Origin: Macrostomum lignano
Taxonomy: Eukaryota
NCBI GenBank assembly: GCA_002269645.1
Contig: NIVC01001207.1
Location: forward strand, 23,541 to 87,540
DNA: 64,000 nucleotides
Direction: 5' to 3'
A program made the position numbers and the translations under genes. Position 1 is the stretch's first letter. Each line of letters opens with the position of its first letter. Under the pieces are notes generated by a model. It did not search any database. It saw nothing but the letters and a program-made list of their open reading frames with translations, and was not told the DNA's origin. Shown here one piece after another: positions 1-56,751 of the stretch.

Positions 1-75
1 AGGAAGGGGCGGATGGAGAGGAAGGGCGGATGGAGAGGAAGGGGCGGATGGAGGGAAGGGGCGGATGGAGAGGAT
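1..75. repeat. Purine-rich minisatellite (aggaaggggcggatggag-like unit), truncated by the window start
   Basis: About 3-4 near-identical tandem copies at the window start. Confidence 0.8.
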
Positions 76-1036
76 AGTGGATAGGGAGAAAGGATCCGCT
101 GTCTCTCCTAGTCTCAGTGTCTATCTATATGTAGCTATTCTGCACCTTCAGATTTACGCATCAAAATCCTTTGGCTGATCTAATATTTGATCCAAACTTT
201 GAAAGGTGAGTGGCGCATAATGAATGGTGCAGTTGGCAAAGGAAGTGAAGAGAGAGAAAGAAAGAGAAAGGAAAAAGATATAGTGAGATAGATGTGCCCA
301 GAGTGAGAGATGGATAATGCCATTCCATATAGATCAGCATGTTCGTGCATCTAAAGTTAAAAACTGAACGAAGAGGAAAAATAGGTCTTAAAAGAAAAGA
401 ACTTTAGGAACTTTTCTCGCGTTGTCATTGGTTAGCCTAGTTTATTGCTCAGCCATGAGGATTGGCTGTTCCTGGCTGCTTTTTTGGCGCAACCAATTAG
501 CTATCATGAAATGTGTTCCCATAGGTCTTGAACCTTTGGCATTGGATCCAACGTCTCTTCCTGCGTTTCGCGATATATACAAGCTACATAAAATTTAAGA
601 CTGATTGCCCTTAATTACTTTAAACTTTCATTTTCAAAGCTCTTCAATAGCATCTGACATCTGCAACATCGTTTTGGAGATCGTACAACCGGATATCTGC
701 ATCTTTCGTGAAACTTTTAAAATATTTTTTCTAATTATTGGCTTTTTATTCATATAGGCTTAGTCCAGGTCAATTAACATAATATTCTCATTAGGTCTAA
801 CTTAGTTTTATTAGCTAATAAACTCAAATAGCAATTTAGGGTCTTATAAGTCTAGTGATATTGTAGTGATCAAATCCATAATTCTAGCTGTGCTTCTAGC
901 TGTTCTAGCTATTACTGTGTAGACTAGCGTATATACTTCGTATATAAACTAAATTTAGTCGAAGACTAGGCCGTATAGGTTTGTTTAGTAGTTCTTTAAG
1001 TTTTTTTACAAGGTCTAAATTAATAGAGAGACAGGT

Positions 1037-1394
1037 ATGGCAGCAATTAGAAGCAAGAAGGAGAGAGTCCAAGCCGCAGTGGACAGTGTAATTGAAAGAA
1101 TTCGCACTGGCAAAGAGTGCAATTATCGAAAAATTGCTCAAGAATTTTCCGTACCTACCACCACCGTTTATGACAGAGCTCGCAGGCTGATGAACGGGCT
1201 GAAGGTGACGGAAAAAAATACTGCCAAGCGGTATTTGACGCAGGCCGAGGAGCGAGTCTTCTGTGATGCAATCAAGCAGGCCGCTCGACAGCAGGTCCCC
1301 ATCACGAGGAAGAAGCTGCTCGAAATGGCAAGTGAGACTGTCCGCAACATCGGCGTTTCGAATGAGGAGCGCTGCGGTTTGCGTGACGCACAAG
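1037..1394 (+). CDS. Transposase exon 1: pipsqueak-type HTH plus Tc5/CENP-B HTH DNA-binding domains
   Basis: NYRKIAQEFSVPTTTVYDR (HTH_psq-like) and YLTQAEERVFCDAIK...PITRKKLLEMA (HTH_Tnp_Tc5-like); donor caag|gtaggc at 1394/1395. Confidence 0.8.
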
Positions 1395-1472
1395 GTAGGC
1401 CAAATTTTAAAATAATAAGAAGCCTGCTTGGACTCAAACATATTTAACTGTTAATTCTCTATCAATCGCATG

Positions 1473-4400
1473 TCTATCTCTGAATCAGCACCTGTCTATC
1501 ACCTCTCTATCAGCCGCCCGTCTGTCTCCTCTCTATCAGCCGCCGTCTGTCTCCTCTCTATCAGCCGCCCGTCTGTCTCCTCTCTATCCGCCGCCCGTCT
1601 GTCTCCTCTCTATCCGCCGCCCGTCTGTCTCCTCTCTATCCGCCGCCCATCTGTCTCCTCTCTATCAGCGCCGGCGCCCGTCTGTCTCCTCTCTATCAGC
1701 CGCCCGTCTGTCTCCTCTCTATCAGCCGCCCGTCTGTCTCCTCTCTATCAGCCGCCCGTCTGTCTCCTCTCTATCAGCCGCCCGTCTGTCTCCTCTCTAT
1801 CAGCCGCCCGTCTGTCTCCTCTCTATCAGCCGCCCGTCTGTCTCCTCTCTATCAGCCGCCCGTCTGTCTCCTCTCTATCAGCCGCCGTCTGTCTCCTCTC
1901 TATCAGCTGCCCGTCTGTCTCCTCTCTATCAGCCGCCCGTCTGTCTCCTCTCTATCAGCCGCCCGTCTGTCTCCTCTCTATCAGCGCCCGTCTGTCTCCT
2001 CTCTATCAGCCGCCCGTCTGTCTCCTCTCTATCAGCCGCCCGTCTGTCTCCTCTCTATCAGCCGCCCGTCTGTCTCCTCTCTATCAGCCGCCCGTCTGTC
2101 TCCTCTCTATCAGCCGCCCGTCTGTCTCCTCTCTATCAGCCGCCCGTCTGTCTCCTCTCTATCAGCTGCCCGTCTGTCTCCTCTCTATCAGCCGCCCGTC
2201 TGTCTCCTCTCTATCAGCCGCCCGTCTGTCTCCTCTCTATCAGCCGCCCGTCTGTCTCCTCTCTATCAGCCGCCCGTCTGTCTCCTCTCTATCCGCCGCC
2301 CGTCTGTCTCCTCTCTATCAGCCGCCCGTCTGTCTCCTCTCTATCAGCCGCCCGTCTGTCTCCTCTCTATCCGCCGCCCGTCTGTCTCCTCTCTATCAGC
2401 CGCCGGCGCCCGTCTGTCTCCTCTCTATCAGCCGCCCGTCTGTCTCCTCTCTATCAGCCGCCCGTCTGTCTCCTCTCTATCAGCCGCCCGTCTGTCTCCT
2501 CTCTATCAGCCGCCGGCGCCCGTCTGTCTCCTCTCTATCAGCCGCCCGTCTGTCTCCTCTCTATCAGCCGCCGTCTGTCTCCTCTCTATCAGCCGCCCGT
2601 CTATCTCCTCTCTATCAGCCGCCCGTCTGTCTCCTCTCTATCAGCTGCCCGTCTGTCTCCTCTCTATCAGCCGCCCGTCTGTCTCCTCTCTATCAGCCGC
2701 CCGTCTGTCTCCTCTCTATCAGCCGCCCGTCTGTCTCCTCTCTATCAGCCGCCCGTCTGTCTCCTCTCTATCAGCCGCCCGTCTGTCTCCTCTCTATCAG
2801 CTGCCCGTCTGTCTCCTCTCTATCAGCCGCCCGTCTGTCTCCTCTCTATCAGCCGCCCGTTAATCTCTGAATCAGCACCTGTCTATCACCTCTCTATCAG
2901 CCGCCCGTCTGTCTCCTCTCTATCGCCGCCCGTCTGTCTCCTCTCTATCCGCCGCCCGTCTGTCTCCTCTCTATCAGCCGCCGGCGCCCGTCTGTCTCCT
3001 CTCTATCAGCCGCCCGTCTGTCTCCTCTCTATCAGCCGCCCGTCTGTCTCCTCTCTATCAGCCGCCCGTCTGTCTCCTCTCTATCAGCCGCCCGTCTGTC
3101 TCCTCTCTATCAGCCGCCCGTCTGTCACCTCTCTATCAGCCGCCCGTCTGTCTCCTCTCTATCAGCCGCCCGTCTGTCTCCTCTCTATCAGCCGCCCGTC
3201 TGTCTCCTCTCTATCAGCCGCCCGTTAATCTCTGAATCAGCACCTGTCTATCACCTCTCTATCAGCCGCCCGTCTGTCTCCTCTCTATCAGCCGCCCGTC
3301 TGTCTCCTCTCTATCAGCCGCCCGTCTGTCTCCTCTCTATCAGCCGCCCGTCTGTCTCCTCTCTATCAGCCGCCCGTCTGTTCCCTCTCTATCAGCCGCC
3401 CGTCTGTCTCCTCTCTATCAGCCGCCCGTCTGTCTCCTCTCTATCAGCCGCCCGTTTATCTCTGAATCAGCACCTGTCTATCACCTCTCTATCAGCCGCC
3501 CGTCTGTCTCCTCTCTATCAGCCGCCCGTCTGTCTCCTCTCTATCAGCCGCCCGTCTGTCTCCTCTCTATCCGCCGCCCGTCTGTCTCCTCTCTATCAGC
3601 CGCCCGTCTGTCTCCTCTCTATCAGCCGCCCGTCTGTCTCCTCTCTATCAGCCGCCCGTCTGTCTCCTCTCTATCAGCCGCCCGTCTGTCTCCTCTCTAT
3701 CAGCCGCCCGTCTGTCTCCTCTCTATCAGCCGCCCGTCTGTCTCCTCTCTATCAGCCGCCCGTCTGTCTCCTCTCTATCAGCCGCCCGTCTGTCTCCTCT
3801 CTATCAGCCGCCCGTCTGTCTCCTCTCTATCAGCCGCCCGTTAATCTCTGAATCAGCACCTGTCTATCACCTCTCTATCAGCCGCCCGTCTGTCTCCTCT
3901 CTATCAGCCGCCCGTCTGTCTCCTCTCTATCAGCCGCCCGTCTGTCTCCTCTCTATCCGCCGCCCGTCTGTCTCCTCTCTATCAGCCGCCCGTCTGTCTC
4001 CTCTCTATCAGCCGCCCGTCTGTCTCCTCTCTATCCGCCGCCCGTCTGTCTCCTCTCTATCAGCCGCCCGTCTGTCTCCTCTCTATCAGCCGCCCGTCTG
4101 TCTCCTCTCTATCAGCCGCCCGTCTGTCTCCTCTCTATCAGCCGCCCGTCTGTCTCCTCTCTATCAGCCGCCCGTCTGTCTCCTCTCTATCAGCCGCCCG
4201 TCTGTCTCCTCTCTATCAGCCGCCCGTTAATCTCTGAATCAGCACCTGTCTATCACCTCTCTATCAGCCGCCCGTCTGTCTCCTCTCTATCAGCCGCCCG
4301 TCTGTCTCCTCTCTATCAGCCGCCCGTCTGTCTCCTCTCTATCCGCCGCCCGTCTGTCTCCTCTCTATCAGCCGCCCGTCTGTCTCCTCTCTATCAGCCG

Positions 4401-4490
4401 CCCGTCTGTCTCCTCTCTATCAGCCGCCCGTCTGTCTCCTCTCTATCAGCCGCCCGTCTGTCTCCTCTCTATCAGCCGCCCGTTTATCTC
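1473..4490. repeat. About 3 kb 26-nt minisatellite (cagccgcccgtctgtctcctctctat) inside transposase intron 1, with a recurring higher-order marker
   Basis: Period 26 read directly from the sequence; the marker atctctgaatcagcacctgtctatcac recurs near 1477, 2863, 3228, 3458, 3844 and 4230. Confidence 0.97.
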
Positions 4491-4532
4491 CTCAATGTGA
4501 TTATACGAGTATATATTCTACTTGCCTACCAG

Positions 4533-5830
4533 GTCAAGCCAGCCGGACTGTCGAAGGGCTGGATTACCGGATTTCTGTTGCGCCATCCCGACATCGCTCA
4601 GCGAACGCCGCAGACGGTGAATCCTGCCCGGGCGATCGTAACGGAGGGCCGCATTCGTGATTGGTTTTCCGAGCTGGCCGACTTCGATGACGATGACCTT
4701 GTCGACGGCGCGCTGCAAGATCCGTCGCGAATTTTTAATTGTGACGAGATTGCAGTGCCGCAAGGATTGAAGTCTCACGCTGTTCTGGCAGAGAAAGGAA
4801 TGGTAAACGTGGTGCAGAAGGTCCACGGCAGTGACCGGAAGCATACCACAGTTTTAATTTGTGTTCAATGCTCAGGTTCTCTATTGCCACCCCGCTTTGT
4901 TTTTCCAGGAAAGACGCAGCCTCGAATGGATGGCTATCCCACTGATTGTCATTATTCTTTTTCACCCAACGGGTGGATGACCACCACTGGGTTTGAGGAA
5001 TTTATTAAAAAAACATTCATGCCCTATCTAGAACAAAAGCGAGTTCGCCGTCCTGTTGTCCTTTTCACAGATTTACACGGCTCCAGATTTTCGCTGGAGG
5101 TTCTGGAGTATCTGAGGCAGCAGAAGGTTGTGCTCTACGGGCTGGTGCCGAACGCAACGCACGTCATGCAGCCTCTGGACCTCGCTGTGTTTCGTCCCGT
5201 CAAGATGGGATGGCGCGAGCTTCTCGCCGACAGGTCCCGGAGTGCTGCGATTGGAGACTGTCACCAGGCTGCGATTCGTGGAAATGCTCCGCGAGGTCCT
5301 GGCAGAGCGGGCTACTCCGCAGAACATCATGGCTGGCTTCCGAAAAAGTGGCATTTTTCCGCGGAACCCTGATGCTCTAGCGTATGACAAGCTCTGCAAG
5401 CGGCAAGACCCGGCTCCTAAGCAGCAAGCAGCAGGTGAGAAGGATTGTGAATGCGTGCTAAAAGCAAGCAACACCGCCCCCACCTCTAGCCTCCCACAGA
5501 AAAAATTTAAATCAAAAAAGTGCCAAACAGCCTCAGGCTCTGTGGAGCGCTGCTTCGAGGATGTTCTTGGCACCGCTAAGCTTCACGACTTGCAAACGAA
5601 GCCAGCAACGACCGACAATGATCGCGTACTGCAGCAGCTGCTGCTGCGCCTGACCGGACAGGTGAACTGCCAACAGATCAGTGACGAGCACGTGAGCTCC
5701 GACCAGCAGAGCACTGACAGCGAGGACCAGATCGAGAGCAGCCCACTGCATCATCCCTCTCTCGATGAGGATACCGTCGAGGCGGTTGAACCACAGAGTG
5801 AGGATTTGCTCGATGCAGAGAGACAGTCTG
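4533..5830 (+). pseudogene. Transposase exon 2: DDE_1 catalytic domain with a +1 frameshift near 5240-5260
   Basis: RIFNCDE, TTVLICVQCSGSLLPPRFVF, SPNGWMT, LFTDLHGS and HVMQPLDLAVFRPVK in ORF 4497-5372. The expected continuation NIMAGFRKSGIFPRNP is in the next frame (ORF 5128-5838). Confidence 0.85.
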
Positions 5831-5959
5831 GTGAGTAGTCGGTAAATTTTGAAAAGTAAACTCAAATTAACGTATAGTATACAAGTAAATTTCACGTAAA
5901 GACGTAAAAGATGTGACACTGTAAATTACATTGTACACTACTTTAAGACCATCTTCCTA

Positions 5960-6400
5960 ATTTTCTCTCCTCTCCTCTCTCCTCTCTCCTCTCTCCCCCT
6001 CCTTCTCTCCTCTGCTCTCCCTTCTCCCCTCCTCTCCCTTCTCCTCTCTCATCTTCCTTCTCCCCTCTCCTCTCCCTTCTCCCCTCCTCTCCCTTCTCCC
6101 CTCCTCTCCCTTCTCCCCTCCTCTCCCTTCTCCCCTCCTCTCCCTTCTCCCCTCCTCTCCCTTCTCCCCTCTCCTCTCCCTTCTCCCCTCCTCTCCCTTC
6201 TCCCCTCCTCTCCCTTCTCCTCTCTCCTCTTCCTTCTCCCCTCCTCTTCCTTCTCCCCTCCTCTCCCTTCTCCCCTCTTCGCTCCCTTCTCCCCTTCTCT
6301 CCATTCTCCCATCCTCTCCCTTCTCCCCTCTCCTCTCATCTTCCTTATTTCCCCCTCTTCTCTCTCCCTTCTTTCTTTCTCATCTCCTGTCTATGTTACA
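5960..6400. repeat. Polypyrimidine (ctcccttctcccctcct-like) low-complexity repeat in transposase intron 2
   Basis: C/T-only tandem motif; the minus-strand ORFs here are repeat artefacts. Confidence 0.9.
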
Positions 6401-6520
6401 CAGTCATGCGCTATATTTTATATCTGATCATTAACTTAAAAGCTTATCGACTTCATCATTCATATATATTTTTTCTTCATGATTGCTAAGTTTGAGCTAC
6501 AAATTATTTATTTCGTTCAG

Positions 6521-7629
6521 GTGCCTTTTGCTCGGTGACGTCAGTATCACCCGCAGCTCGAGAAACAGCCGAGTCGATGGCGTTCCCGATAAAGCGGAAC
6601 CGGACTCCAGTTTCCGGCAAGAAAAGAAGAACGTCCGTTTACCAGGACATTCCGCATCCTAACTTAACTAGCCGCTCTACTTTAGCCTTTTTCAGACTAA
6701 GACAGCAAAAGCGTCAGGCTGCTCTGGACGCCAAGGCCGCACGGCAGACCGCTCGGAGGCTTCGGGCACAGCAGCGTCAGCGTCAAGGTTCCCGGCGACT
6801 GCAGTCGAAGCAGACGGTCGCAGCTGAGCAACCGGTCGCCCAATCTGCCGTGCTGGATATGTCCGTCGCTTTAGGTCGGCTTGAGAGCAAGGCGAAGTCG
6901 TTGAATTGCTCCTTAGGTAAGGCAGATTCTTTTGGAAATTGTTTTTTTGACTCCGTCCGGCAGGTGCTGAGTTCCGAAGGCATCAATTCCGACGCCGACA
7001 GACTTCGATCAGACAGCTGCGCTTTCCTAGAGCAAAACTCCTATGTAAATGGTGAGAGTATCGTTGACTTTTTGGAAATGCCACTTAATGACTATTTACA
7101 AAAAATGAAACGTTCAAGTACCTATGCTGATCATCTTATTATCGTTGCATTAGCCAATTTCTTAGACAGGCCTTTTCAGATTTACCAGCTTGACCGTCCG
7201 GAGCCGGTAGTCATCATGCCAGAGGATCGCCACCCAGAAGGGCAATCAATCAAGCTGGCGCACATCCCAGAGCTGCACTATCTGCCGATGCTGCCGCTAC
7301 CTCTGCCGGAGCTAAGCGTTGACTGCTGGGTGCTGGTTGCCGTGCAGGCAACTTGCAGAGGACGAAAAGCTTGGCAGCATTACCCGTGTCGAGTCATTCA
7401 ACTCCAGGGCGATGGCCAAGTCGTTGTCTCTGCCTGCACTCAGTCGGTGACAAACTGGATGGCTGGAGGTCAAAAGCCATTCATATTCCCGGCCAAGAGT
7501 GACGAGTTCAGCGCATTGGTGAGTGAGGTCGCAGTTTTACCCAATCCCCATTTTCCTACGGGAAGGAATCCTGGATTCCTCTGGACCCGTGATCAGCTCA
7601 TGAATGCTCGCAGCCGCCTTATTCACTGA
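6521..7629 (+). CDS. OTU-like cysteine protease domain plus C-terminal SH3/Tudor-like beta domain; probable last exon of the transposase gene
   Basis: ADSFGNCFFDSV (Cys codon 6940-6942), STYADHLIIVALANFLDRPFQIY and ELHYLPM (His codon 7276-7278). Acceptor tttcgttcag| at 6520 is phase-compatible with the donor at 5831. Confidence 0.75.
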
Positions 7630-7704
7630 GTTGATCACTAGGCCTAGAAATTACGTCCCCATCGTTCTATCACATTTTATGAATTTTATGAACTCAAATG
7701 ACCG

Positions 7705-9225
7705 TTCACTGCTCATTTAATTTCCTGCATTGCTCAACAATTGCCTCATTGCCTAACCTTCAAATCATAATGAATGCTAACTTCACTTTGACATTGCTTC
7801 TATCAAACATCACCATGCACAAGACTTTCATCAAAAGTTTAAAATCTAAAAAAACAAAAAAATTACAAGTATTGCTTGCCTATTTTTCTTCAGCACATTC
7901 GCACTAAAATGACTGCTCACTGACTCAAGCTCTCTCATCTATATTTCCTCTCCTCTCCCCTGTCATCTCGCTCTCTTCTCACCCTCTCTTGTCGCTTCTC
8001 TCTTCTCTCCCCTACCATCATCCCTCTCATCCCTCTATCCCCTCTCCTCTCTACCATCCTCTCCTCTCTCCCCTTCTCCTCTCTCATCTCTCCTCTCCCT
8101 CTCCTCTCTCATTTCCTTTCTCCCTCCTTTCTCATCTTCCGGCCTCTCTCCATTCTCACCTATCCTCTCATCTCCTTTTTCATCTCCTTTCTCCCCTCTC
8201 CCTTTTTCTTTCTCTCTCATCTCCGCCTATCATCTCTCAGCTTGACTCTAATCTATTCGCTTTTCCCTTCTCTCTCCTCTCTCATCTCCCTTCTCCCCTC
8301 TCATCCGCTCTCTATCTCCTTTCTCACCTCTCACCTCTCATCTTCCCTCTTTATCTTTGCACTGTACTCAAAATTGAAAAAAAACAAAAAAATTACAAGT
8401 ACATGTATTGCTCGCCTATTTTGCTTCAGCACATTCGCACTAAAAATTACTGCACACTGATTGCTCATTAACTTTCATTTAATTTCCTGCATTGTTCAAC
8501 AATTGCCTCATTGCCTAACCTGCACTCTCTATTTAAATCATAATGAATACTAACTCACTTTGACTTGTACATTGCTTCTATCAAACATCACCATGCACAA
8601 GACTTTCATCAAAAGTTTAAAATCTAAAAAAAACAAAAAAATTACAAGTATTGCTTGCCTATTTTTCTTCAGCACATTCGCACTAAAATGACTGCTCACT
8701 GACTCAAGCTCTCTCATCTATATTTCCTCTCCTCTCCTCTCCTCAGCTGTCATCTCGCTCTCTTCTCACCCTCTTCTGTCGCTTCTCTCTTCTCTCCCTT
8801 ATCATCTTCCCTCTCATCCCTCTATCCACTCTCCTCTCTACCATCCTTTCCTCTCTCCCCTTCTCCTCTCTCCTCTCCCTCTCCGCTCTCATTTCCTTTC
8901 TCATCTTCCCTATCTCCTCTCTCCAATCTCCCCTATCATCTCCCTTCTTCCCTCTCCTCTCTCATCTCCTTTTTCCCTCCTTTCTCATCTTCCGGCCTCT
9001 CTCCCTTCTCCATTCTGCCCTATCCTCTCACCCCCTTTTTCATCTTCTTTCTTCCCTCTCCCTTCCTCTTTATTCTCTTTCATCTCCGCCTATCATCTCT
9101 CAGCTCCCCTCTCCCATCTTTGCACTGTACTCAAAATTGAAAAACAAAAAAATTACAAGCATTGCTTGCCTATTTTGCTTCAGCACATTCGCACTAAAAA
9201 TTACTGCATACTGACTGCTCATTAT
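7705..9225. repeat. About 770-bp tandem duplication (2 copies) of AT-rich and CT-rich blocks
   Basis: The block catttaatttcctgcattg...cacattcgcactaaaatgactgctcactgactcaagc is at about 7714 and 8477; tttgcactgtactcaaaattg... is at about 8356 and 9119. Confidence 0.85.
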
Positions 9226-12200
9226 CATTAATTTTCCTTGTCTTGATACATGGCGCTATATATGTCTATAAATCTTACGAGCGTAATATTGGTGACTTTT
9301 GACTTGGTGACTCAGCAACAAGCATTTCCAACGCACATTAATTTAAATTTGGGTCAAAAGCCTATTATCAACAATGGGAAAACATACGAGCTAGATACAG
9401 TAGGTTTTAATAAGCCTTTAAATTTTTTATGGAACTGTAATACTTTTACTTGTAATCCCAATAGAAACATTATGCGTTCTTATACAAAACCATTGGATTT
9501 ATTTTATGTGCCTGACTAATGTCAGAATTTTTTATAATTAAAGATGAACTCAAACTGATAGTGCGGAAGATATGCTTGCTGCTGCGGCAGGGAAGGGCCT
9601 CCTTCTCGGTTAAAAAAGCCCCTGCCGACGAAGCCAAGGAAGAAAGGTGACAGTTAAAAAGAAATTAAAAATGCAACTGTCACTTTTTGAGTCACGACGA
9701 GAAGGAATTGAGCAATATCCTGGAAGCTATCAATGTCAAAAGGCCTAGCTTCTATCCAATTAAGAATGACAATACATGTAGTTACGTTTTTGTAGTGCCT
9801 TATAGGCTTAATCATTGGCCAGCGAATTTAGTCATTTCAAATATTCTGAAGCATAAAAACAAACTCAATAAAGTTTGAGTGCATTCGAGTCTATATCTTT
9901 AATATCTTTCGGCATATTAATTACTGTGGAATATTTAAGGATGAGCTATTCTTGCTGAGTTATAATTATGTATTACATATATGTATGTAGCATTTGCTTT
10001 TTGTATTTCTATTTCGCGTATACATGTACGAGCCTATATCTCTAGTTGGCCTCTGCGAGTTTGGCGCCTATAGTCTGTGTACAGTATCGCAAATATGTAA
10101 GTCAGGTCAGTATTATAGCCTGGCTGCCAGGAGTCGGGGGCAAGAGGGAGCTGCGCCCCCACCCCCCAGGCTGGTAAAAGTATGTAGCGCCCCATTGCCA
10201 GTGGGCTTGGCTCCCCCCCCCCCTCTTGCCACCAAGCTTGCCCATCCGCCCAATTAGAAATTCTGGCTATGCCCTTGTATTAAGACGTTTACTCTATTAT
10301 ACTGCGCACATATCTTAAACCTATAAAAAGGGTCAGCCGATTGCCTGCCATCGATTGGGCCTATGTGGCAATTAGTTTTGCACTCTCTTCAAAGATCTTC
10401 TTGAGCCTGTATACATTAAGTTTAGACCTAGCCCCAGAGAAATGTTGGATTGTGGCCTCTTTTGCAATGTGTATGTGTACAAAATGTATGCAATACAAGT
10501 ATTCAATATGTATACTAAGCGCACAGGCGCACCCAATGAGCCTTTTTTAGGGAGGGTTTAGCGGCCCCATCTTGCTGGTTGTGTCAAGGGGCCCAGTGAT
10601 GACTCAGTGCTCAGAGTCATCAGACTCTGCAGACTCAGAACGAGATGATTGTTTTCAACAAAATTTTAAGAACTTACAGCATTTTTCTCTGCATATTGGA
10701 TTCATCTACTTGAAGTAGAAACATATGAGTATGGTGAGAAAAAAAGAAACAGAATATTTGCAGAATTTGTTTGCAGAAAAATGGACTTTTTTTTACTATT
10801 TCTTGAATTTTTCGCTTTTTCTTCTTTAATGTTTAAAAATGACCAATAATATAGCAAGAAGAGCAGTAGACGAAACTAGTGGTACCTTGATTTTTTTTAA
10901 ATCGTGGTATAATGGTGAAATACAGGCAAGTTTAGGAAGCGAAGGTCCCTTTGAAGAAATCTGAAATGAACAAAATATGAGGTCTGTTTAAAAAAAACAG
11001 GATTTTTTACCTTCGTAAATGATTGCTTAATTAAAAAAGTCTAAAATACGTAGAAAAATATAACTTTTTATCAATTTAGCATGAAAGAGTTCAAATAAAT
11101 CGCAAAAAAGTAAAAAAACACGATTTTTCTGTTCAATGGGGGGTACTATATTCAAATGCAGATAAACAATATTTTTCGGAATCTATCCATGCAAAAGTTA
11201 TACCTTTTAGAAAGAGTATGAACTAATCTTTACAATGATATATATTTCAGAAAAAACGAACAAGAAATAAAAAAGTTATTAGTGTTCAAACACAAAAACC
11301 GAACATCAGATATCCTGTTCGGTTTGAAGATACCCTAGAATCATCGTTCGGTTTTGATATAAAATCATCAATAACTTTCTTTCTACTTGTGCAATCAAGT
11401 AAAGCGAACATTCATTTGAAAGAAAAAAAATGTTTTAAACAACTTCGGGGTAGTTTCATTTCATTACATATAAAACTTTCTTTCCTATCTATGAGAGAAT
11501 GTCGAAAAATGACACTTTCATGTTCGGTTGATGAGATCTTACCCTAGTGAGTTTCTATTTCCGCGATTCTTACTGTACGTACTTTACTACTATTGTTTTA
11601 CTGTATCCTAATTCCTATCGTATTTCAAATGCAAATGCTCTGTGTTTTGGTGTTAGTTCTCCTGTGCGCCGTAGTAGTTGTAGTTGTAGGGTAGCATAGC
11701 CGTTCCAGAGTTCCAGTCGATCCAGTTTTAATTCAGTAATAGATATAGACATTATTTAGAATTTATCTTAATTACTTTGACTACATAGATTGTTCAGATA
11801 CGAATACAAATATATAAATGAAATGAATTAAGGCGCATTGCACCCACAAGCCAATAACGCAATCGTTCATTCATCTGTCATCACAACGAAAATAAGGCGA
11901 TTCTTTGAATTCTTGGACTTCAAGAAACTTATTTTACATTGGCAACCATGCCAGCAAAGAAACGCTGGATCTGCACATTTACAGCCAAGTCAAGTATATT
12001 TATTATTGCCTATTCTACCCTGCCTATTGACTACTGTCTATGCCTAATGGATCATTAAGACAATTGACAATATTTTTTGGTCAGCTATTTTCAATAATAT
12101 CAATCTGCTTATTGAAGAACTGGTATTCATTTGGACCTAATTGCTATTATAAATTAATTATCTTGCTTGACTAGTTCTCATTGAAATTTAGTCCTATCAA

Positions 12201-12337: not shown

Positions 12338-13290
12338 ATGCCACCAAAGAAAGTAGTGCCTACAGGCAAATTAACAAAGACAAAAAGTGCTTCAAATACT
12401 AGCAAACCAAAGACAAGGTCTACTACTAAAAACAAGGCAAATAGTCAGCAAGTGCCATTATCATCAGTTGCTACTAAACACTTGTGTCCATCTAAAAGTG
12501 CTAATAACAATGCTCAGCCAATCAAATCGGAGGTTGAAGCTCCTAAAATAGTAACTCAAACAAACCAGGAATGTGATTCAATTTCTGTTACAAATCCAGT
12601 AGACTATTCAAGGCCTAATCAATATCCAATTAACTCTTTACCAGTTGCTAGTCATCTTTTGCAACCTATTGAATCTATTCTAAGTACCAAGCTATGCAAA
12701 TTCAATTGCCGCCAATTCCAAAGCCAGTGCCATTTAATAGAAAAGAAAATTTTGCGGATTTCCTATGCCAGATTGAAAGCTACATCAGTAGGTTTTCAAA
12801 TTTAACTGAAGCAATTAAAATTCAAACTTTATCAGCATTCTTAGGATCAGCATTTAGTACTTATCGCTCGTGGCTCTCAACTATTTATGTAACGCATGGT
12901 GTGCCTGTCAACACTCCATTAGAAAATATTCCAAATGTCACTTTCTTGGAATGCACAGAATTTCTCCGAGGCCGCTATGGTGAGAAAAGCAATGTTGTTC
13001 TACGCCGTGAACTTAGAAATCTATCTAGGAAACCAACAAAGACATTTGAGCAATTTCTTACTGCTTTACAAAACCTGGCTATCCAGGCCTACCCAGATGC
13101 AATTGCTACTGAAGTTGTGCAAACCATGATCTTAGATCAGTTCATAACTGGCATCAACGACCTCAAGGTCATGGAGCATCTATCAAATCTCACCAACTTG
13201 GAGACAGCAGAACAGGCCTTGCAGATTGCACAACAAGTCCGTGAGACACAGCAACTCTTGGCAAAAGCACCAGTGAGTAGTCAGATATAA
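12338..13290 (+). mobile_element. Ty3/gypsy-type gag relic (two overlapping ORFs linked by a frameshift), no pol downstream
   Basis: A basic MPPKK N-terminus (12338-12805) overlaps 12694-13290, which has a retrotransposon gag capsid signature (FNRKENFADFLCQIE, FLRGRYG, ELRNLSRKPTKTFEQFLTALQNLAIQAYP, ILDQFITGI). Confidence 0.75.
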
Positions 13291-16539: not shown

Positions 16540-17720
16540 AAGATGTCCTGATTCATTGGGGAAGGAATTTTTTAGTTTTCAAGGCTTATGGGGAAGTGTC
16601 ACTGAGATGTCAAGCCCCATGGTGGTATAACTGAAATGGTGTGGCTCATGAGAGAATTTTCCAGATGTAAAGACTCATTGGGGGGATCGCTGAAATGGTG
16701 TGGCTCTTAGCGCAGGGTTAGGGTTAAGGATAGGGTTGGTTCAACCATACATTTATCGCCCTGTCAACCATAGACGGCTCATGGGGGAATTGCCAAACAA
16801 TATGTCAAGGCTCATGGGGAATTGCCAAACAATATGTCAAGGCTCATGGGGGAATTGCCAAACAATATGTCAAGGCTCATGGGGGAATTGCCAAACAATA
16901 TGTTAAGGCTCATGGGGGAATTGCCAAACAATATGTCAAGGTTCAAGGCTCAATCTGGGGCGGTGGCGGAAGAGGGCCTCGAGCCCACTGAAGTCCCTGG
17001 CCAGGATAGGGAGGCCGATGCAGCCGGGAGGGTGGACAGCCCACCTGAGGAAGACTCCACCGACCCCCGGGCCTCCTACGCTGATGCGGCAAAGAGGCAA
17101 CCGGCGGTTGTCATTCTGGGGAAGGACGCGCGCCTGTCTCCCGACCAGCTGAAGCAGCAGGTGAGAGGTGCCTTTGATGGCCTCCTGTGGAAGCTAACTC
17201 TGAAGGGCACGCCTCTGAACATTTATTCGAATGCGACGAGGGACTCTATCTGCCACTGCCCGGTTTTCACCAGGGCCAGGCTCACTCACCTCGTGCCAAA
17301 CCCGGTTTTCTCCGACGTTTGCAGGCCCGAGAGCATCCGCGGCTCCCCCGGTACCTCAGGGACACCGGACGAGCTGAGTTCTTCCCCACCGTTGGTGAGG
17401 AGGACCGCGCTGCAGGCGAGACTGACGGGTCCCCCTGAGCGACATCATTTCAACGGAAGTCATTGGTCGCCAGGGGCTAGCGGAATGGGCGGTCTCCTCC
17501 GCCTCCTCGCTGCATCCGCCGGACGCCCCCTGCAGCTAAGTCAAGTAAGTCAAGGGGGAATCGCCAAACAATATGTCAAGGCTCATGGGGGAATTGCCAA
17601 ACAATATGTCAAGGCTTATGGGGGAATTACTAATATGCCAAGGTTCATTGGGGAATCGCTGAAATGCTGTGTCTCATGGGGAGAATTTTTTTAAGTGTCA
17701 AGATTTATGGAAGGGGAATT
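16540..17720. repeat. 33-nt minisatellite (aggctcatgggggaattgccaaacaatatgtca) with degenerate edges, interrupted by a LINE derivative
   Basis: Near-perfect copies at 16775-16952 and 17554-17640; decayed copies further out on both sides. Confidence 0.85.
16953..17553 (+). mobile_element. 600-bp composite non-LTR element: ORF1-like 5' part joined to the 3' end of the RNase H LINE family also present at 60529-61766
   Basis: 17247-17553 is nearly identical to 61459-61766, including the (taagtcaag)2 tail. 16953-17246 encodes an ORF1-like SYADAAK segment. Confidence 0.8.
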
Positions 17721-24274: not shown

Positions 24275-25533
24275 TATATATAGTTTTAATTTGTTAAATT
24301 GCTATAAATATTTAATGGACAAGATGTTTTAGAATTAAATCAAAGATTCTAGTCAATCTTTACTTACAAAAATAAAAAGCAATTAACTATAATTGTTGTA
24401 TATTAATCTAAACAAATCTTTTTCTTTGTTTTTACTTTTAACTTTGTATCTATATAAATATGACCATTTAGCTATAAAATAGGAATTTCATGTTGATTAG
24501 ATACATGAACCAACTTTACCAACCGAAAACCCAATATATTGTTATGATAAACATTGTTTATTTGAAAAAATAACTATTTATGACAAATAAAAATTTGTAG
24601 CCTTGTTACAACAGTTAATTTATTTAAACTATTAAAATAAAACATGCAATTTTATCTTTATATTATTCAAAATTTAGCCTAATATTTGCTAATAGACACT
24701 TCTACTTAAAGTAGAGCTATGAAACTTTGGTTTGTCATAGATATATATAAATATATAATATTATAATAAAAGTTGAAAATCAATTTCCAGCTTAAAGCCA
24801 ATAACTATACTTTGTTGTTTGAATTAAACAAAAGTTAATAATAAGCTTGTTAAAATTTGAATATGATTGCGAATATCAATCTATAAGGTAAATATAATTA
24901 TTATACTTGTAAAATTATCTTTGTGACCTATATATAGGCTAGTGATTATATCCTGATTAAGCAAACCCTCTGGCACAACTGCTGTTTAAACACTTGTAAC
25001 ATTACATGAGCTAAAAAAAACCAATAGGCCCTAATGATAGCAGAAGCAGAACTTAAACTTGGTCCTAGAGATAATAAGTTGACATTGTTAATTGACTGAC
25101 TATTGCCAACCTTCTATGATCTGTACTTTGTAGGGCTAAGGCAGTGGTGACAGTCTCGTCTTTAGTCTTTCATTTGTCTATTTTTCATATCTTTCATAAT
25201 TGTAAACTTCTGTAAGTTTCATTTTTTATAATTCTATGTTGTACATTGTATGCACATGATAATAAGTGTAAAACAAATTTTCCCAGAAGTTTGGTTGGCA
25301 GAAAAATGTTGATTTTAAGGGAGATCATTTTTGTCTAAATTTGAAAGTTTTGAGCTTTTCTGGTTTACTGATATCAAAAGCATAGCAGTGGAAATGATAA
25401 GTATTTTTTCTGCTACTTTTTATAATCTTAAAATGATAATGTAGCAAAGTATCATGGACTTATTGTATTCATGTTGCTGTGTTTTGAACAATGTAACACA
25501 AAAACAAATCTAAACTTCTATATTTCAGCTGTT

Positions 25534-28500
25534 ATGCACTATCAACACCTGATCCTCTTCTGCATAATTGCTGCCACTCTCGCAGCCAATGAAAAGCCAA
25601 GATTCAAGTTCTCCGAGACCAACAAGATCATGCTGTCCTGGGAAGAAACATGGGAAGTTGGATCGTCAAACATGTTAGCATTTTTGAACACTGACAAACG
25701 GCTAATAATTAAAATCGTAGTCGTAGGAAATGTTGGTACTGGCTTGAGAAGAATTCTACAGTTCAAGTGCAGGCGAGATTATGTTGAGTCAATGATGGAC
25801 ATGGAATCATTGAAGTCCAGCTCAAATGAGGTCCAGTGTAAAGACACTATACCATTTTCAGTGAGGCTTAAAAACGAGCGCGAAAATGAATTCGACTTCA
25901 CGCTACTGTCGTCAAAATTACCATACTCGCATGCCTTTTCTGATAAAATCGAATTGCGAGTACGCATCGAGCATTCGTCTGGCGTTCTTGAATCCAATAG
26001 CCTATTTGTATGGAATTTAGATGCCATTGGCAAACTGAACCCGGATGGTAGGCGTTTCCTTTCTACAGGGGCTGAACAGTTTCTGAAGCGAATGTCGGAG
26101 AACATGCCGGATACAGAGTTTGATAGTACGCAATTTTTGGATCCTGCCATGAGCCAAATAATCAAGGAGGCTCCAGAATTTCTCAAACCGAAGATTAACA
26201 TCGGAGCTATTCTTAACTTTGACGCTGGCACATGCGAGTCCTATCAGATATCAAGGGCGTCGCTCTTTGTCAACTATCACTCAAAATTGGATGAAAGAAA
26301 CCAGAATCTACTTAAGCATATCTATTTGGACACGGAGACTGGTCTGTTGCACTACTCGCGATACGGTCTCAGTTCCATAATCTCTGATTTTTTTTCTTCC
26401 AAGAGTCCGGTTCAGATTGGTATTTGCGCAACTTTATCGTTCGCAGGCCAAGGCCAACCCTATGACAAAACATTCTCTATTGCGCAGAAGATACCAAAGA
26501 CTGAGCTGTCCTACAAGACACTTGGAGATCGAAACTCAAATTGCAAAATAATCGGTTCTACTAATCAAAAAGCGGTCACAATATTCTCTGGTATGGACTA
26601 CACTCCACTTGTTTGTCCCATTATATGCAACAGTCCAAACCAAGTGTACAGATTTTTTCACGGTGATAAGGGTCTTGTTCCGGATACGCGGCGCGATTGG
26701 ACAGAAGTGAATGGGATTCGAATCTCCAAGACGGGCAACATAATAGAGTTTCCGCCGATAATTTACAATAAACATTCGGGTGCCTATACGTGCGTCGCTG
26801 GTGGTACAAGGTTCACCTTTAACACGCAAGTAATTTCCATGCCGCAGTTTACGTCAAAATCGTATGGTAGCAGCTCTAGCTCAGAAATTTCTGGTAATCT
26901 GCCACCAACAGTGTATGCTATGGAAGGCGAAGGACTATCTTATAACTGCACGGCATACTTTACCAACGTTGCAACTACAAATGTCTTACCGGTCTTTTAC
27001 AGTGCTGCCTTGGGCGAAAACAATTGGAAAAAATACGATTTAGATAGTTTCAATCGTCTAATGGCTACTCCGGTGTCCAATGTTATAACTGTGCCGAAAG
27101 TTTCTCAACTTGAATCGATGACGCTAACATTCAATATTGGCAAAGTTCCGCCAGCAAATCCGTCAACTGGATTGAATTTCACGCATCGTTGCGTGTGTGA
27201 CGTAACTGTTGGCACAGCTGACACCCAAAAGATTGGTATGCCATCTTACAGCGTGCAGAGTGGCAGCAGTGTTTTCTTTTTGAGCCGTCCTCTACTAAAC
27301 AGCTTCGACATAAGCATGGCAAAGAACTGTAGCTTGCAGTCGTGCACCGCCTCAGATGGGGCGTATTTCCAATTTTCACTGAAGCCTCAACTTGCCGCCT
27401 ATTTGAAAGCGATTGGCGTTTCCGTGACAGGTTACTTCAAGATTGATGATGATTACTTGGACTTTGTCAAGGTGCTTAATCAGCCGGATGTGGCAAAAGT
27501 ATCCTACGATCCGGATACAACAAAGCTTTCCTTTAAAGTTAATCGCATAACAAAGCCTGAAGTGTTAACCGAGCTTCAGTCGCGCAAGACGCTGACACCA
27601 ATATTCAACTTTCGCTACAAAGAGGGCACAAAATCGCCCAATCTAGTTTTTGACAAGAAGCGCTACGGCCCGCGCCAACTTGTTGCTGGTAAGCGCGACT
27701 GTCGATCGGACGATCTCTGCTTCTACTCTACCGACTTTGACGCTGACACCACTCTTCAAGGCCTCATGCTTGGCCTGGACTTCAAGGGTCAGCCTGTTGT
27801 TGGCGAAAATGCGGCGACTGCCAGCACTAGCATCATTGTGGGAATCATATTGGCTATTGTTTTACTGCTAATTATTGCCGTACTCATCGTCTTCCTTCTT
27901 CGACGCGACACCGGTCAGACCTATTTGCTAGACGAGAAGGAACGCCAGCAGGGCAATCATCCTGAGCAGGAAGCCAAGGAGGAGCAGTTCAAAGAGTATC
28001 AGCGACCCGAGGAGGGCCCGCTGAAGGCCAGGCAGATGTCAGTGGGCTCGAGTATCTCTGCTGGTAGCAAAGATGACCAAGAGCTTGAGGAATATGGCAA
28101 CGACGATATAGACTGCAGTAAGTACTGTTCAGTGTGTACGATACATAGCATGACTTAATTGGCATAATCTTCATGGCAAAGCAAACCTAATATGGTCAAG
28201 CTCCATCCCAAAAAAGGCTAATTTCTAGAATCGTAAAACTAACTGCGATCAAAATGAATGAGCTCCCGCTGTTATGACTGGCCGAGTGCTCCATTTGCCA
28301 TGTAAAGAATTTAAGCCTAAAGAAATTGTCGAGACGAAGAGTATTTAGCCCGCCTTTATCTCTTATCTCTTATCAGTCTCACAGCGCCTGTTAATAAATT
28401 TTATAGACTAATTCTGCCCTGTCTTTCCGCCCATATGCGCAACTATTGTGTAAATGGGGCCAAGCACAAAGCTCAACATTGCGAACTCAGGTTAAAATTA

Positions 28501-32426: not shown

Positions 32427-35229
32427 ATGATGGCTTGGAGACAGACTTTCAGCCGGCTATGCGTGCTGCTGGCGGCCATACTAGCAGTTAGTGTTGCGCA
32501 GAAGTCGCCACAGTTTGTGTACTCACAGTCTAACAAAATTATGCTGTCCTGGGACGACGTCTGGGAAGTTGGCGTATCCAACAAGTTGGCCTTTCTTAAC
32601 AAAGATAAGCGGCTTATTATCAGGATTAACGTTGGCGGCGATACTGGCAACAGCTCTGGCACCAAGGTTCTAGTTTACAGGTGTACTGAGTCGAGTCCTC
32701 CGGAGGAAGTCGCTCTTAGTAGCGTTCAGTCGCAGAGTAATTATTGTCCGGGCACTATGCCCTTCACCATTAGTAAAGTGAGCGGAAAGGAAGGCATTGA
32801 CTTCTATTTTACACTTTTGGATTCGATGCAAACTTACGATAACGTGTTTTCTCAAAAGATTCAACTGTACATCCGGGTTGAATTTCCTGTCGGCACAATC
32901 ACATCCAACAGTCTGTTTGTTTACAACCTGGACGCTATTAGCAAATCGCCCAGTTCATCGTCTAACGACGCCATTATTGACAGCTTTTATAAGCGCTTTC
33001 TAACTGTGCCGGCCATCAATTTCATGATCCAGATGAACACTACCGCCGATCCATTCTCTTATGTGCCCTTTATCGACCAGCAGATTGTCGATCGGATTCG
33101 TTCAGCTCCGGATTTTATCAAGGCAAAGATAAACATTGGGGCAATTTTGCAATTCGATGCCGGCGACTGTCAGAATTTCCAGTCGCATTTGGTCTCTATG
33201 TTTGTTAACTACTACTCAAAGATGAATGAGAATAATATTAATTTGTTAAAACATATTGGACTAAGCTTGGATGACGGCAGGTTGTACTATTCGAAATATG
33301 GACTAACAACCGCCATATCAAACTTCTTCAGAGACCGAGGATCGCCCAAAGAAATCGGTATTTGCACTCTAGTTTCTTTTGCTGGTCATAGCCAGCCGTA
33401 TTTCAAGGTTGATGAGGTTAAGCAGAGAATATCTACTACTATTGTGAATTATAAGCAAATGGGTTCAAGAACCACTGAATGTTCGATTGTTGGCTCGGGC
33501 ACGGCTCGATCAGTGAGCATATTTGCTGGCATGGACTACACCCCGTTAGTGTGTCCAATTATTTGTGACGATCCTAACCAGGTGTTTAGATTTTACCATG
33601 GCAACCAACAAATTGTGTCCAACGGTCAAAGCGAATGGACTTATGTTCAGGGACTGAAAATTTCTCGAACAGGAAATGTAATCGAATTTCCAGCTGAGCT
33701 TTTCGAGAACGACTCCGGTGAATACAGGTGCGAGGCTGGCGGGAAGAGCTTCAAGTTTGACGTTAAAATTGTCTCCATGCCCCAGTTTTTAACAAGATTG
33801 CACGATAGCGACAGCAAAATTGTTTCGGGAGACTTGCCTCAAGTAGTATTTGCAATTGAAAACGAGACTCTCTCTTATAACTGCACAGTGTACTACACTA
33901 ATATGGACCAAGTCGACGTGATTCCAGCCTTTCACACCATTGGCACCGCTGATCAGAAGTGGAAAAAGCTCGATCTGGACCAATTTAATCAGATGTTTTC
34001 CTCTTCTGTTTCCACCGTTCGCCAGTCAACTCTTAAAACAAACGAAACCAAAACACTAAACCTGACAATCTCCCGGGTGCCTGTCTCCGATTATTCAACT
34101 TATCTGAACTTCACTCATCGATTTGTGTGCGATGCATCTGTCAGCCCTGCCGATGCCCAGAAGGTTGGCCTACCATCATACAACATCCAGAGCAGCAGCA
34201 ATGTCATCTTTCTTAAGCGACCCACGATTTTAAGTTTCAATCGAACGTCTGCTAAGCCTTGTTCTGAGCAGAAATGCTCCAACAAAGTTGGCGGTACTTT
34301 TGAAGTCTCTTTGAGCCCCGACATGACTCGTCGGTTGGCGGCAAGCGGTGTCAAAGTGTTTGCCTATTTTAAGATTGACAACGAGCTGCTTGAAAACATT
34401 CATACCATCCATGGACAGGATATTTCTGTATCAAAGTTCTATCCCGAGACGAACCGTTTGTTGTTTAAAATATTGCCTAACGCTAAAAAAGAAGTCATCT
34501 CGATTCTACAAAAGTACAAATATTTAACGCCAGTATTTAATTTTGGGTACAAAGACTCCTCCGGTACGAAGCTTACTAATCTAAACTTGCACAAAGAGCG
34601 CTACGGCCAGCCTATTGTGTCATTTGGTGACCGAGACTGCCGAGCCGATTCTACCTGCTTTTACTCCACCGACTTTGACTCGGCTGATTTGCTCGCCGAT
34701 TTAAGCATCAGACTGGGTTTCGATTGGATCAGCGACGAGCAGCCGGCTGCTGGGCTAGCCAGCGCCAGTGCCGGCCTCATTGCTGGCATCACCCTGGCCG
34801 CTCTCATTGTTCTAATTGCAATCATACTCCTGGTGCTGCTTCTGAGACGCGACTCGGGCCAGACTTACTTGGTCGACGAGAAGGAGCGCCAGCAGGGCAA
34901 CCATCCCGAGTTGGAGGTCAAGGAGGAGCACTTCAAGGAGTACCAGCCGGCGGAGGAGGCGCCAATGCGGGCTGAAAGAATGTCGCTGAATTCCTACTCG
35001 GGTGTGTCAATCAAGAGTCAAGACGATCGAGAATTGGACGTCTACAAAGACGACATGGGCGATAGTGAGTGCTCATTTGTCTGTTTGTATCTATAAATTG
35101 TGCAATAATTCCATTATATAATAAACTTAAATCATTTTATACTCTTTAGTGGGCGATTTCACCGAGGACGGCTCGTTCATTGGTGAATACTCGGCCAAGA
35201 AAAAGAAGCAAGACAACTCGGCAAACTAA
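32427..35229 (+). CDS. Tandem paralog: type I membrane protein with Ig-like domain(s) and a neuroglian/L1CAM-type tail (FIGEY); exons 32427-35064 and 35150-35229
   Basis: Signal peptide; collinear with the upstream paralog (NKIMLSW, GMDYTPLVCPIIC, CFYSTDFD); SGEYRC Ig motif; TM; a phase-1 85-nt intron gives MGDFTEDGSFIGEYSAKKKKQDNSAN*. Confidence 0.9.
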
Positions 35230-39736: not shown

Positions 39737-46459
<6,723 letters not shown>

Positions 46460-56500: not shown

Positions 56501-56751
56501 GCCGCCGGTCTTCAATCCACCAAGGCCTTGCTGGGTGATGGGCCGATCTTCGAACTTGGGAAGAAAAGCAGAAAAAATGCAATTCCAATAAGTCAATGGT
56601 CTCAAAGCGTAAGGCTGAATCGTGGAAGAGTTATTCTTACCCGCACGTTGGCTCCTGCGGCAACTGCCGAGCCGCCCTTTGTCTCCGGGCGCATTGCAGT
56701 TTTCAATCTGGAGGCTGTGCCGGGCCTCAGCGCTGAGCCTCTGCTAGCCAT
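50578..56751 (-). CDS. IFT74: Intraflagellar transport protein 74; exons 56751-56641, 56554-55820, 54787-54227, 50883-50578 (570 aa if the 56751 ATG is the start)
   Basis: DRPITQQGLGGLKTG, DKSYYIGLLRSKINEL, QGELADYNTLVDKLNT, VKQEAV, KEDNQEIGTMERQ and ENENHSQLSNLERKWQHHEQNNFVMNEFIASK match IFT74 motifs along the whole length; all junctions are phase 0 GT-AG. Confidence 0.95.
50912..51475. repeat. 16-nt minisatellite (aacttcttattacctg) at the 3' end of IFT74 intron 3
   Basis: Period 16, about 35 copies; reads caggtaataagaagtt on the transcribed strand. Confidence 0.93.
52141..52476 (+). other. GC-rich ORF with two hydrophobic segments, antisense inside IFT74 intron 3; possible nested gene exon
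   Basis: LLTALLLLAVALLVSVAVFGVVIL and AAALVLVCLALYLLIFAAL; no family recognised. Confidence 0.3.
52585..53425. repeat. 26-nt minisatellite (gggttagagatacttcagggagttca) in IFT74 intron 3
   Basis: About 30 tandem copies. Confidence 0.95.
54886..55836. repeat. 30-nt minisatellite in IFT74 intron 2 derived from the exon 2 / intron 2 junction
   Basis: The unit on the minus strand is gtgagactttgagggagactgctggctcag; its last about 18 nt copy the end of exon 2. Confidence 0.97.

Follow-up and report, generated by a model that had tools for sequence, protein, structure and literature searches.

The window considered here, a 64-kb stretch of Macrostomum lignano DNA (contig NIVC01001207.1, positions 23,541 to 87,540 of the forward strand), contains at 1037-7629 on the plus strand a predicted gene in which a transposase of the pogo type is followed, in the same coding unit, by an OTU-family cysteine protease domain and a small C-terminal module. 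Four plus-strand open reading frame (ORF) pieces (1037-1447, 4497-5372, 5128-5838, and 6535-7629) combine into a three-exon model with a conceptual product of 920 amino acids (aa). The features of this model, numbered from the first letter of the window and compared where indicated with L001, a related contig described below, are the following.

1037..1394, plus strand: exon 1, with an ATG start, encoding an HTH_psq-like region and the first half of a CENP-B/Tc5-type helix-turn-helix (HTH)
1395..4532, plus strand: intron 1, with AT-rich unique ends (GC 34% and 33%) and a minisatellite array between them
4533..5830, plus strand: exon 2, encoding the remainder of the Tc5 HTH, the catalytic DDE_1 domain, and an acidic linker that is variable
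about 5249..5250, plus strand: site of a frameshift within DDE_1, where 2 nt are deleted when compared with L001
5831..6520, plus strand: intron 2, with a gtgagt start, a ttcgttcag end, and unique ends of 28-29% GC
6521..7629, plus strand: exon 3, encoding a linker, a basic region, the OTU domain, and the C-terminal module, TGA stop included
6628..6702, plus strand: conserved motif RTSVYQDIPHPNLTSRSTLAFFR (TSVYQ..FFR), with KKRR just before it, 84% identical to L001
6841..7305, plus strand: OTU cysteine-protease domain, with the Cys codon at 6940-6942 (GNC) and the His codon at 7276-7278 (HY)
7309..7626, plus strand: C-terminal beta-rich module, a predicted small barrel common to the C-termini of OTU-less pogo-like transposases

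The transposase part is recognized most clearly by its catalytic domain. The Pfam check proposed for the spliced model returned DDE_1 (E 2.1e-13, 50.7 bits, cut-off 22) together with OTU, and placed HTH_Tnp_Tc5 (E 0.0038) and HTH_psq (E 0.19) each under its cut-off; of the HTH_psq, CENP-B HTH, and DDE_1 blocks claimed in an earlier sequence-only reading of this DNA, the last therefore stands, and the HTH matches are weaker in this copy than was claimed. The N-terminus of the window product can nevertheless be aligned with those of its two closest relatives, L001 and P0089, and in the latter both HTH_psq and HTH_Tnp_Tc5 score above cut-off. The catalytic Asp codons lie at 4743-4745, 5070-5072, and 5178-5180 (D190, D299, and D335 of the model), and all three residues of the DDD triad are retained by the window copy and P0089, each with the DD35D spacing (35 residues from the second to the third Asp). 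The DDE_1 core, with a DDD triad at a spacing within the pogo range, agrees with membership in the pogo superfamily. Protein identity over the DDE part is 69% between the window and L001, and the nearest OTU-less relatives, at 30-32% identity, are named at source, for example, "tigger transposable element-derived protein 1-like" or "jerky". A linker motif, CQT..G.(V/I)..C.E(D/E)(V/L)(L/I)G, is also kept in the window (5482-5580, model aa ~437-469), L001, and P0089.

Downstream of the transposase, the OTU core that had been read from the GNC...HY residues is borne out by a Pfam OTU (PF02338) score above cut-off (E 1.3e-7 for the model and 4.2e-8 for the ORF alone, 32.6 to 34.2 bits, cut-off 23.3), by both motifs, and by a fold match. 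Sequence comparison with phmmer against the PDB gave marginal OTU matches only (E 0.011-0.1), and confirmation of the fold required a structural search. The AlphaFold model, a predicted structure, has a predicted local distance difference test score (pLDDT) >90 over residues 11-150, and Foldseek retrieved with it OTUD5/DUBA (3tmp, E 2.8e-8), wMelOTU, OTUD3, OTUD1, and Otu2 (E 3e-8 to 6e-7), the OTUD3 structure (4bou) aligning with a template-modelling (TM) score of 0.83 and a root-mean-square deviation (rmsd) of 2.3 A; the window domain, as modelled, has the OTU (papain-like) fold. The catalytic Cys and His are conserved in the window, L001, P0089, and nearly all of 31 aligned relatives, and these relatives also conserve a Glu at position -2 and a Gly/Ala-His at position -5 from the His. 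Two departures from the usual pattern had been flagged as casting doubt on catalysis, namely a Phe three residues before the Cys and the lack of Asn or Asp after the His. Both residues are as reported, and the doubt is largely defused by the 31 relatives: Asp is common, not universal, at the first position, and the second (Leu in the window, Met in L001, Val in P0089) varies across the relatives, so that the absence of Asp/Asn characterizes the clade and does not reflect decay of the window copy. The domain is probably a ubiquitin-removing enzyme.

The splice junction that brings the OTU domain into frame was likewise anticipated. The donor tctg/gtgagt at 5830/5831 and the acceptor ttcgttcag/gt at 6520/6521, which had been proposed to join the DDE exon to a 364-aa ORF, agree with the present model, the split codon G+GT across intron 2 leading into the frame of that ORF; the phase 1 assigned to this donor holds for the downstream frame, not for the exon as a whole, which is read in two frames. 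At the other intron, exon 1, the product of which can be aligned with L001 over aa 6-119, ends at a phase 1 donor (aag/gtaggc, 1394/1395), the sole GT donor there, and the best acceptor is a polypyrimidine tract followed by ctaccag/g at 4532/4533. The exons have 51-55% GC and the unique intron parts 28-34%, and the change falls exactly at the GT and AG boundaries, which supports real introns, not random insertions. An in-frame TAG (5836-5838) stands two codons past the intron-2 donor, such that retention of intron 2 would yield a transposase of ordinary length without the OTU domain; in intron-bearing members, retention versus splicing could switch between a plain transposase and an OTU-bearing form.

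Both introns are rich in simple sequence. The core of intron 2 (5964-6386) is CT-rich low-complexity DNA, and intron 1 is filled by about 115 copies of a 26-bp minisatellite, GTCTGTCTCCTCTCTATCAGCCGCCC, which extend over 3 kb (1494-4493) and among which a variant unit, cgttaatctctgaatcagcacctgtctatcacc, recurs at irregular spacing. Each unit of the array holds a pyrimidine run with cag at its end (acceptor-like ctctatcag), which amounts to more than 100 decoy 3' splice sites within intron 1.

Past the OTU domain, the beta-rich module noticed in the sequence-only reading proved to be conserved (58% identity between the window and L001) and predicted to be beta-rich. AlphaFold, supplied with a six-sequence alignment, gave a confident beta-rich fold (pLDDT 89, predicted TM score 0.79). 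Pfam at E <= 10 offered no match for the module or for the linkers, and Foldseek returned nothing significant for the module (best E 0.067), its non-significant matches including Tudor-type barrels (SGF29, PHF20, and FMRP) at low rmsd. The suggested likeness to the C-termini of other DDE_1 transposases, and with it the idea that the OTU domain sits inside the transposase, is moderately supported. A hidden Markov model (HMM) of the C-terminal ends of four DDE_1 proteins that lack OTU (P0013, P0016, P0018, and P0020) gave the window and L001 modules higher scores than any of 1000 shuffles, and the reverse profile test gave p <= 0.007; the comparison of the modules by hhalign was weak (P 5e-4, probability 31%). 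With this moderate support, the OTU domain appears from the sequences to have been inserted ahead of an older C-terminal module. Two further OTU-less pogo-like proteins, P0014 and P0017, end in PHD-finger-like zinc fingers (Pfam PHD E 0.008 and 1e-4, respectively, both sub-cut-off); a PHD finger in these two versus a beta-barrel in the four proteins named above suggests that C-terminal additions are modular.

The same architecture recurs outside the window. The transposase part, used as query, retrieved P0001, a 644-aa ORF that holds DDE_1 and OTU together on a Logan contig of run SRR30276804. This contig (L001, 3191 nt) is 52% identical to the window and has no intron at either window intron position. 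A single reading frame of the contig, broken by one in-frame stop, covers model aa 6-811, and another covers aa 816-916, the change of frame implying one frameshift; its second catalytic Asp is replaced by Asn. Its homology to exon 3 begins right at the window acceptor, upstream of any start codon, and exon 3 is therefore not a free-standing gene. P0089, an intact 838-aa ORF on a second contig (L003, Logan contig DRR639055_75149), has HTH_psq, HTH_Tnp_Tc5, DDE_1, and OTU all above the Pfam cut-offs, and the window model aligns with that contig over aa 10-809 in one frame, without introns (26% identity, E 1e-74). When the window transposase part served as query, P0089 scored 204 bits versus at most 196 for any OTU-less relative. 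Both closest transposase relatives carry a predicted OTU domain downstream in the same frame and are intronless, and the domain order is conserved in three independent sequences.

Selection on the downstream domains can be read from the comparison of the window with L001, in which the proportion of synonymous differences (pS) is saturated at 0.66-0.77. The proportion of nonsynonymous differences (pN) is 0.12 in the TSVYQ..FFR motif, 0.20 in the DDE part, 0.28 in the C-terminal module, 0.355 in the OTU domain, and 0.47-0.51 in the linkers. As pS is saturated but pN is low in the OTU domain and the C-terminal module, both have been kept by selection within this coding unit. The original claim that DDE_1, OTU, and module form a single gene, as opposed to a chance adjacency, is upheld by this constraint together with the shared order in L001 and L003; the refuting case named for it, in which other copies of the DDE exon lack the OTU exon, is contradicted by L001 and P0089, which both carry OTU.

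The pogo-OTU lineage is rare. An exhaustive HMMER search with the OTU and C-terminal part gave 100 relatives at E <= 0.001, only three of which (P0001, P0089, and P0025, the third ORF of L001) are on pogo-OTU contigs. Among 51 long OTU relatives, Pfam partners comprise kinase, Mab-21, TPR, Roc-COR, LRR, NACHT, HEPN, and glycosyltransferase domains; five proteins, including P0046 and P0036, join OTU to an rve integrase and are Ginger1-like, one has a hAT dimerisation domain, and one (P0089) has DDE_1. The joining of OTU domains of the same clade to rve and hAT domains suggests that OTU capture was repeated across several transposon superfamilies. The closest OTU protein outside the pogo-OTU family is P0024, from the bivalve Sinanodonta woodiana. 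The window OTU ORF, looked up as an exact sequence from two alternative starts, had no entry, a word-based search of proteins with this 364-aa ORF returned no match, and JGI (Joint Genome Institute) metagenome contigs scanned with window and L001 patterns gave 452 pattern matches, none of them confirmed.

The window copy itself is damaged. Exon 2 consists of two frames, frame 0 (ORF 4497-5372) and then frame +1 (ORF 5128-5838), and the Pfam DDE_1 match breaks off at the frameshift, at profile position 132 of 177. Between the CGG at 5238 and the end of a Phe codon at 5277, the window has 40 nt versus 42 nt in L001. A small intron was considered as the cause of the frame change and rejected, the stretch being exactly 2 nt shorter than in L001. 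At intron 1, the donor at 1394/1395 combined with the best acceptor at 4532/4533 is out of frame. A canonical in-frame junction was sought and none exists with that acceptor; the frame of exon 1 is kept only by weaker acceptors at 4509/4510 or 4542/4543 (exon 2 starting at 4510 or 4543). The copy is disabled by the 2-nt deletion in DDE_1 and probably further by the out-of-frame intron-1 junction, and as assembled it is therefore unable to make the full fusion protein. This damage had been overlooked in the sequence-only reading.

Taken together, the locus is probably a decayed copy of an autonomous pogo-superfamily (DD35D) DNA transposon, with one transposase gene encoding a polypeptide of HTH, DDE_1, OTU, and module. 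Disabling lesions are present in two of the three members, the window copy (frameshift) and L001 (in-frame stop, frameshift, and Asn for Asp), which makes them resemble decaying transposon copies. Several observations weigh against this reading. No inverted repeat of at least 14 nt outside low-complexity sequence was found between 1-1100 and 7600-11000, and no TA target-site duplication was found in the flanks (1-1036 versus 7630-11000); there is no second copy within the 64-kb window; an Asp or Asn as third catalytic residue two past the OTU His is missing across the whole clade; and in a neighbour-joining tree the window and L001 are paired with 100% bootstrap support and P0089 is not sister to that pair, a placement which allows either one or two OTU acquisitions. 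The search of the flanks for terminal inverted repeats (TIRs) yielded low-complexity matches and one 10-nt match, as expected by chance, and the ends of L001 or L003 bear no TIRs, these contigs possibly being incomplete. The flanks are themselves repetitive: the gene is followed immediately by a ~770-bp tandem repeat (7690-9250) that includes CT-rich low-complexity blocks, and the upstream flank is GA-rich (1-90 and 240-300), the reverse-complement type of the downstream CT-rich low-complexity sequence.

An immobile host gene, or a recent pseudogene of one, in which a pogo transposase and an OTU domain were recruited in the manner of POGK, POGZ, JRK, and CENP-B, would account for the introns, the TIRs not found in the flanks, the single copy in the window, and the long-term constraint on all domains, and the nearest other OTU relatives are indeed multi-domain proteins of host type (kinase, Mab-21, Roc-COR, NACHT, and LRR). 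Such an origin is unlikely, however, given that two of the three known members are disabled, as is typical of transposon copies, that neither the window copy nor P0089 has lost any residue of the DDD triad, and that animal DNA transposons commonly carry introns (0-4 in Ginger1; PMC2836005). The intact ORF by which domesticated pogo-derived genes (POGK, POGZ, JRK, TIGD, and CENP-B type) are known is broken in the window and L001 and intact in P0089. It is highly improbable that a pogo fragment merely came to lie beside an unrelated OTU gene or element (for instance, part of a Ginger1 or a Helitron) with a coincidental in-frame GT-AG join; the region is rich in repeats and the OTU ORF by itself matched nothing in the word-based search, but the same domain order in one frame in L001 and L003, the L001 homology that starts from the acceptor ahead of any start codon, and a gene model free of rve, Rep, or helicase domains all speak against it.

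The role of the OTU domain admits a further alternative, according to which it would be a cis-acting processing protease that cuts the linkers to release a mature transposase, or else a non-catalytic ubiquitin-binding module. Long, poorly conserved linkers flank the domain and its canonical third catalytic residue is absent; moreover, arterivirus PLP2 is an OTU-fold enzyme that performs both polyprotein processing and ubiquitin removal. The three-way alignment contains no conserved Gly-Gly-type cleavage motif, which tells against processing, and the strict retention of Cys and His tells against pure binding, such that this alternative is given little credence.

Under the preferred reading of a pogo transposon encoding its own deubiquitinase-type protease, the polypeptide of this lineage begins with HTH_psq and a CENP-B/Tc5-type HTH for DNA binding, proceeds to the DDE_1 catalytic core and a variable acidic linker, and continues through a basic stretch with the conserved TSVYQ..FFR motif to the OTU-family cysteine protease and the small beta-barrel module. 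In the window copy, the gene is split by two predicted spliceosomal-type introns that have since been filled with satellite and low-complexity DNA. The substrates of the OTU domain would be the transposase or proteins present where the element is excised or integrated, and removal of their ubiquitin or ubiquitin-like modifier would shield the transposition complex from ubiquitin-dependent removal or change ubiquitin signalling at the DNA break, and the barrel module may help to target chromatin. The role first suggested, stabilisation of the transposase or the countering of ubiquitin-based silencing, remains pure inference.

Comparable associations have been described in other elements. In invertebrate animals, a single Ginger1 gene, often intron-bearing, encodes a cut-and-paste transposase with a C-terminal OTU domain (pfam02338); OTU or Ulp1 domains have been described in Ginger1 transposases and OTU in Helitrons (PMC2836005), in agreement with the sequence-only reading. 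The window gene resembles Ginger1 in joining a transposase to a downstream OTU domain in one intron-bearing gene, and the same OTU clade is joined to rve integrases in the five relatives mentioned above. It differs in its core, which in Ginger1 is an rve integrase of the Gypsy type, marked by YPYY, a zinc finger, and GPY/F, whereas the window gene has a pogo-type DDE_1 with HTH_psq/Tc5-like regions, and in having a C-terminal barrel module past the OTU domain; as the 920-aa model gives no rve match, it is not a Ginger1 element. Helitron/Helentron elements carry OTU and/or VTD deubiquitinase domains in their main transposon protein (PMC9741609, PMC4224331); transposon-borne VTD domains are active deubiquitinases, and transposon OTU domains have never been assayed (PMC9741609). 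The window protein likewise holds a deubiquitinase-type cysteine protease within a transposon protein, and VTD activity supports the general idea, but Helitrons/Helentrons use rolling-circle Rep/helicase proteins, unlike the DDE transposase of the window; no Rep or helicase match was found in the model and no such ORF within 1-10000. A Mutator-like element (MULE) with a Ulp1 SUMO-protease (cited in PMC2836005) likewise pairs a DDE-type cut-and-paste transposon with a protease of a ubiquitin-like pathway, although it belongs to the Mutator superfamily and its protease to the Ulp1 (C48) family, as opposed to pogo and OTU.

Within the pogo superfamily (Tigger, pogoR, Passer, Lemi, Mover, and Fot), the window gene shares DDE_1 with a DDD triad and, by weak matches in this copy, HTH_psq and CENP-B/Tc5 HTH (PMC7386202, PMC7325037), but canonical pogo transposases finish soon after the DDE domain, and the TIRs with a TA target-site duplication expected of the group were not found in the flanks examined. 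OTU, protease, and ubiquitin go unmentioned in the large pogo surveys (PMC7386202, PMC7325037), and full-text literature searches, with Repbase outside their scope, gave no published description of a pogo-OTU element, consistent with the earlier statement that no such family is described. The theme of DNA transposons capturing deubiquitinase-type proteases is known, and the pogo-type carrier is new. That the three sequences represent an undescribed pogo lineage in which the deubiquitinase is an obligatory, selected part of the transposase can be advanced only tentatively, as a doubtful possibility.

The remainder of the window has animal-type gene content, comprising IFT74 exons, a class C G protein-coupled receptor (GPCR), two paralogous membrane proteins with Bravo/L1 tails, and remnants of long interspersed nuclear elements (LINEs). 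The paralogous pair are intronless plus-strand ORFs of 895 and 889 aa (25471-28158 and 32427-35096); each product spans the membrane once and has a cytoplasmic FIGEY tail of the Bravo/L1 type (Pfam E 1e-8 and 2e-6). Exons of a homologue of IFT74 (intraflagellar transport 74) are located at 54188-56605 on the minus strand and 54835-55923, with a 27-bp minisatellite between them that reads KVSPEPAVS on the opposite strand, and class C GPCR transmembrane-region exons (7tm_3), interrupted by microsatellites, at 44418-46459 on the plus strand. The best matches of the IFT74 exon were a contig at 62% identity and proteins of fish and insects at 42-48%. Also on the plus strand are an RNase H ORF of a LINE-like retroelement (60515-61651), a fragment related to it (16822-17694) with which it has the peptide CHCPVFTRARLTHL in common, and Gag-like ORFs (12338-13290). 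An Rfam scan of the window found nothing.

If the pogo-OTU fusion is what it appears to be, it would add a fourth, mechanistically simple superfamily to Ginger1, Mutator, and Helitron, the known bearers of OTU, Ulp1, or VTD domains. Cell-based transposition assays exist for pogo-type elements, e.g., Passer (PMC9976928), and since pogo is a well-studied cut-and-paste class, the fusion would make the use of a deubiquitinase to a transposon, a long-standing question, directly testable. On the tentative reading of an obligatory deubiquitinase, the fusion would, with Ginger1, Helitron, and the OTU joined to a hAT domain, point to unrelated DNA transposons having acquired ubiquitin-removing enzymes independently and more than once, and the ubiquitin system would then be a general battleground between host and transposon.

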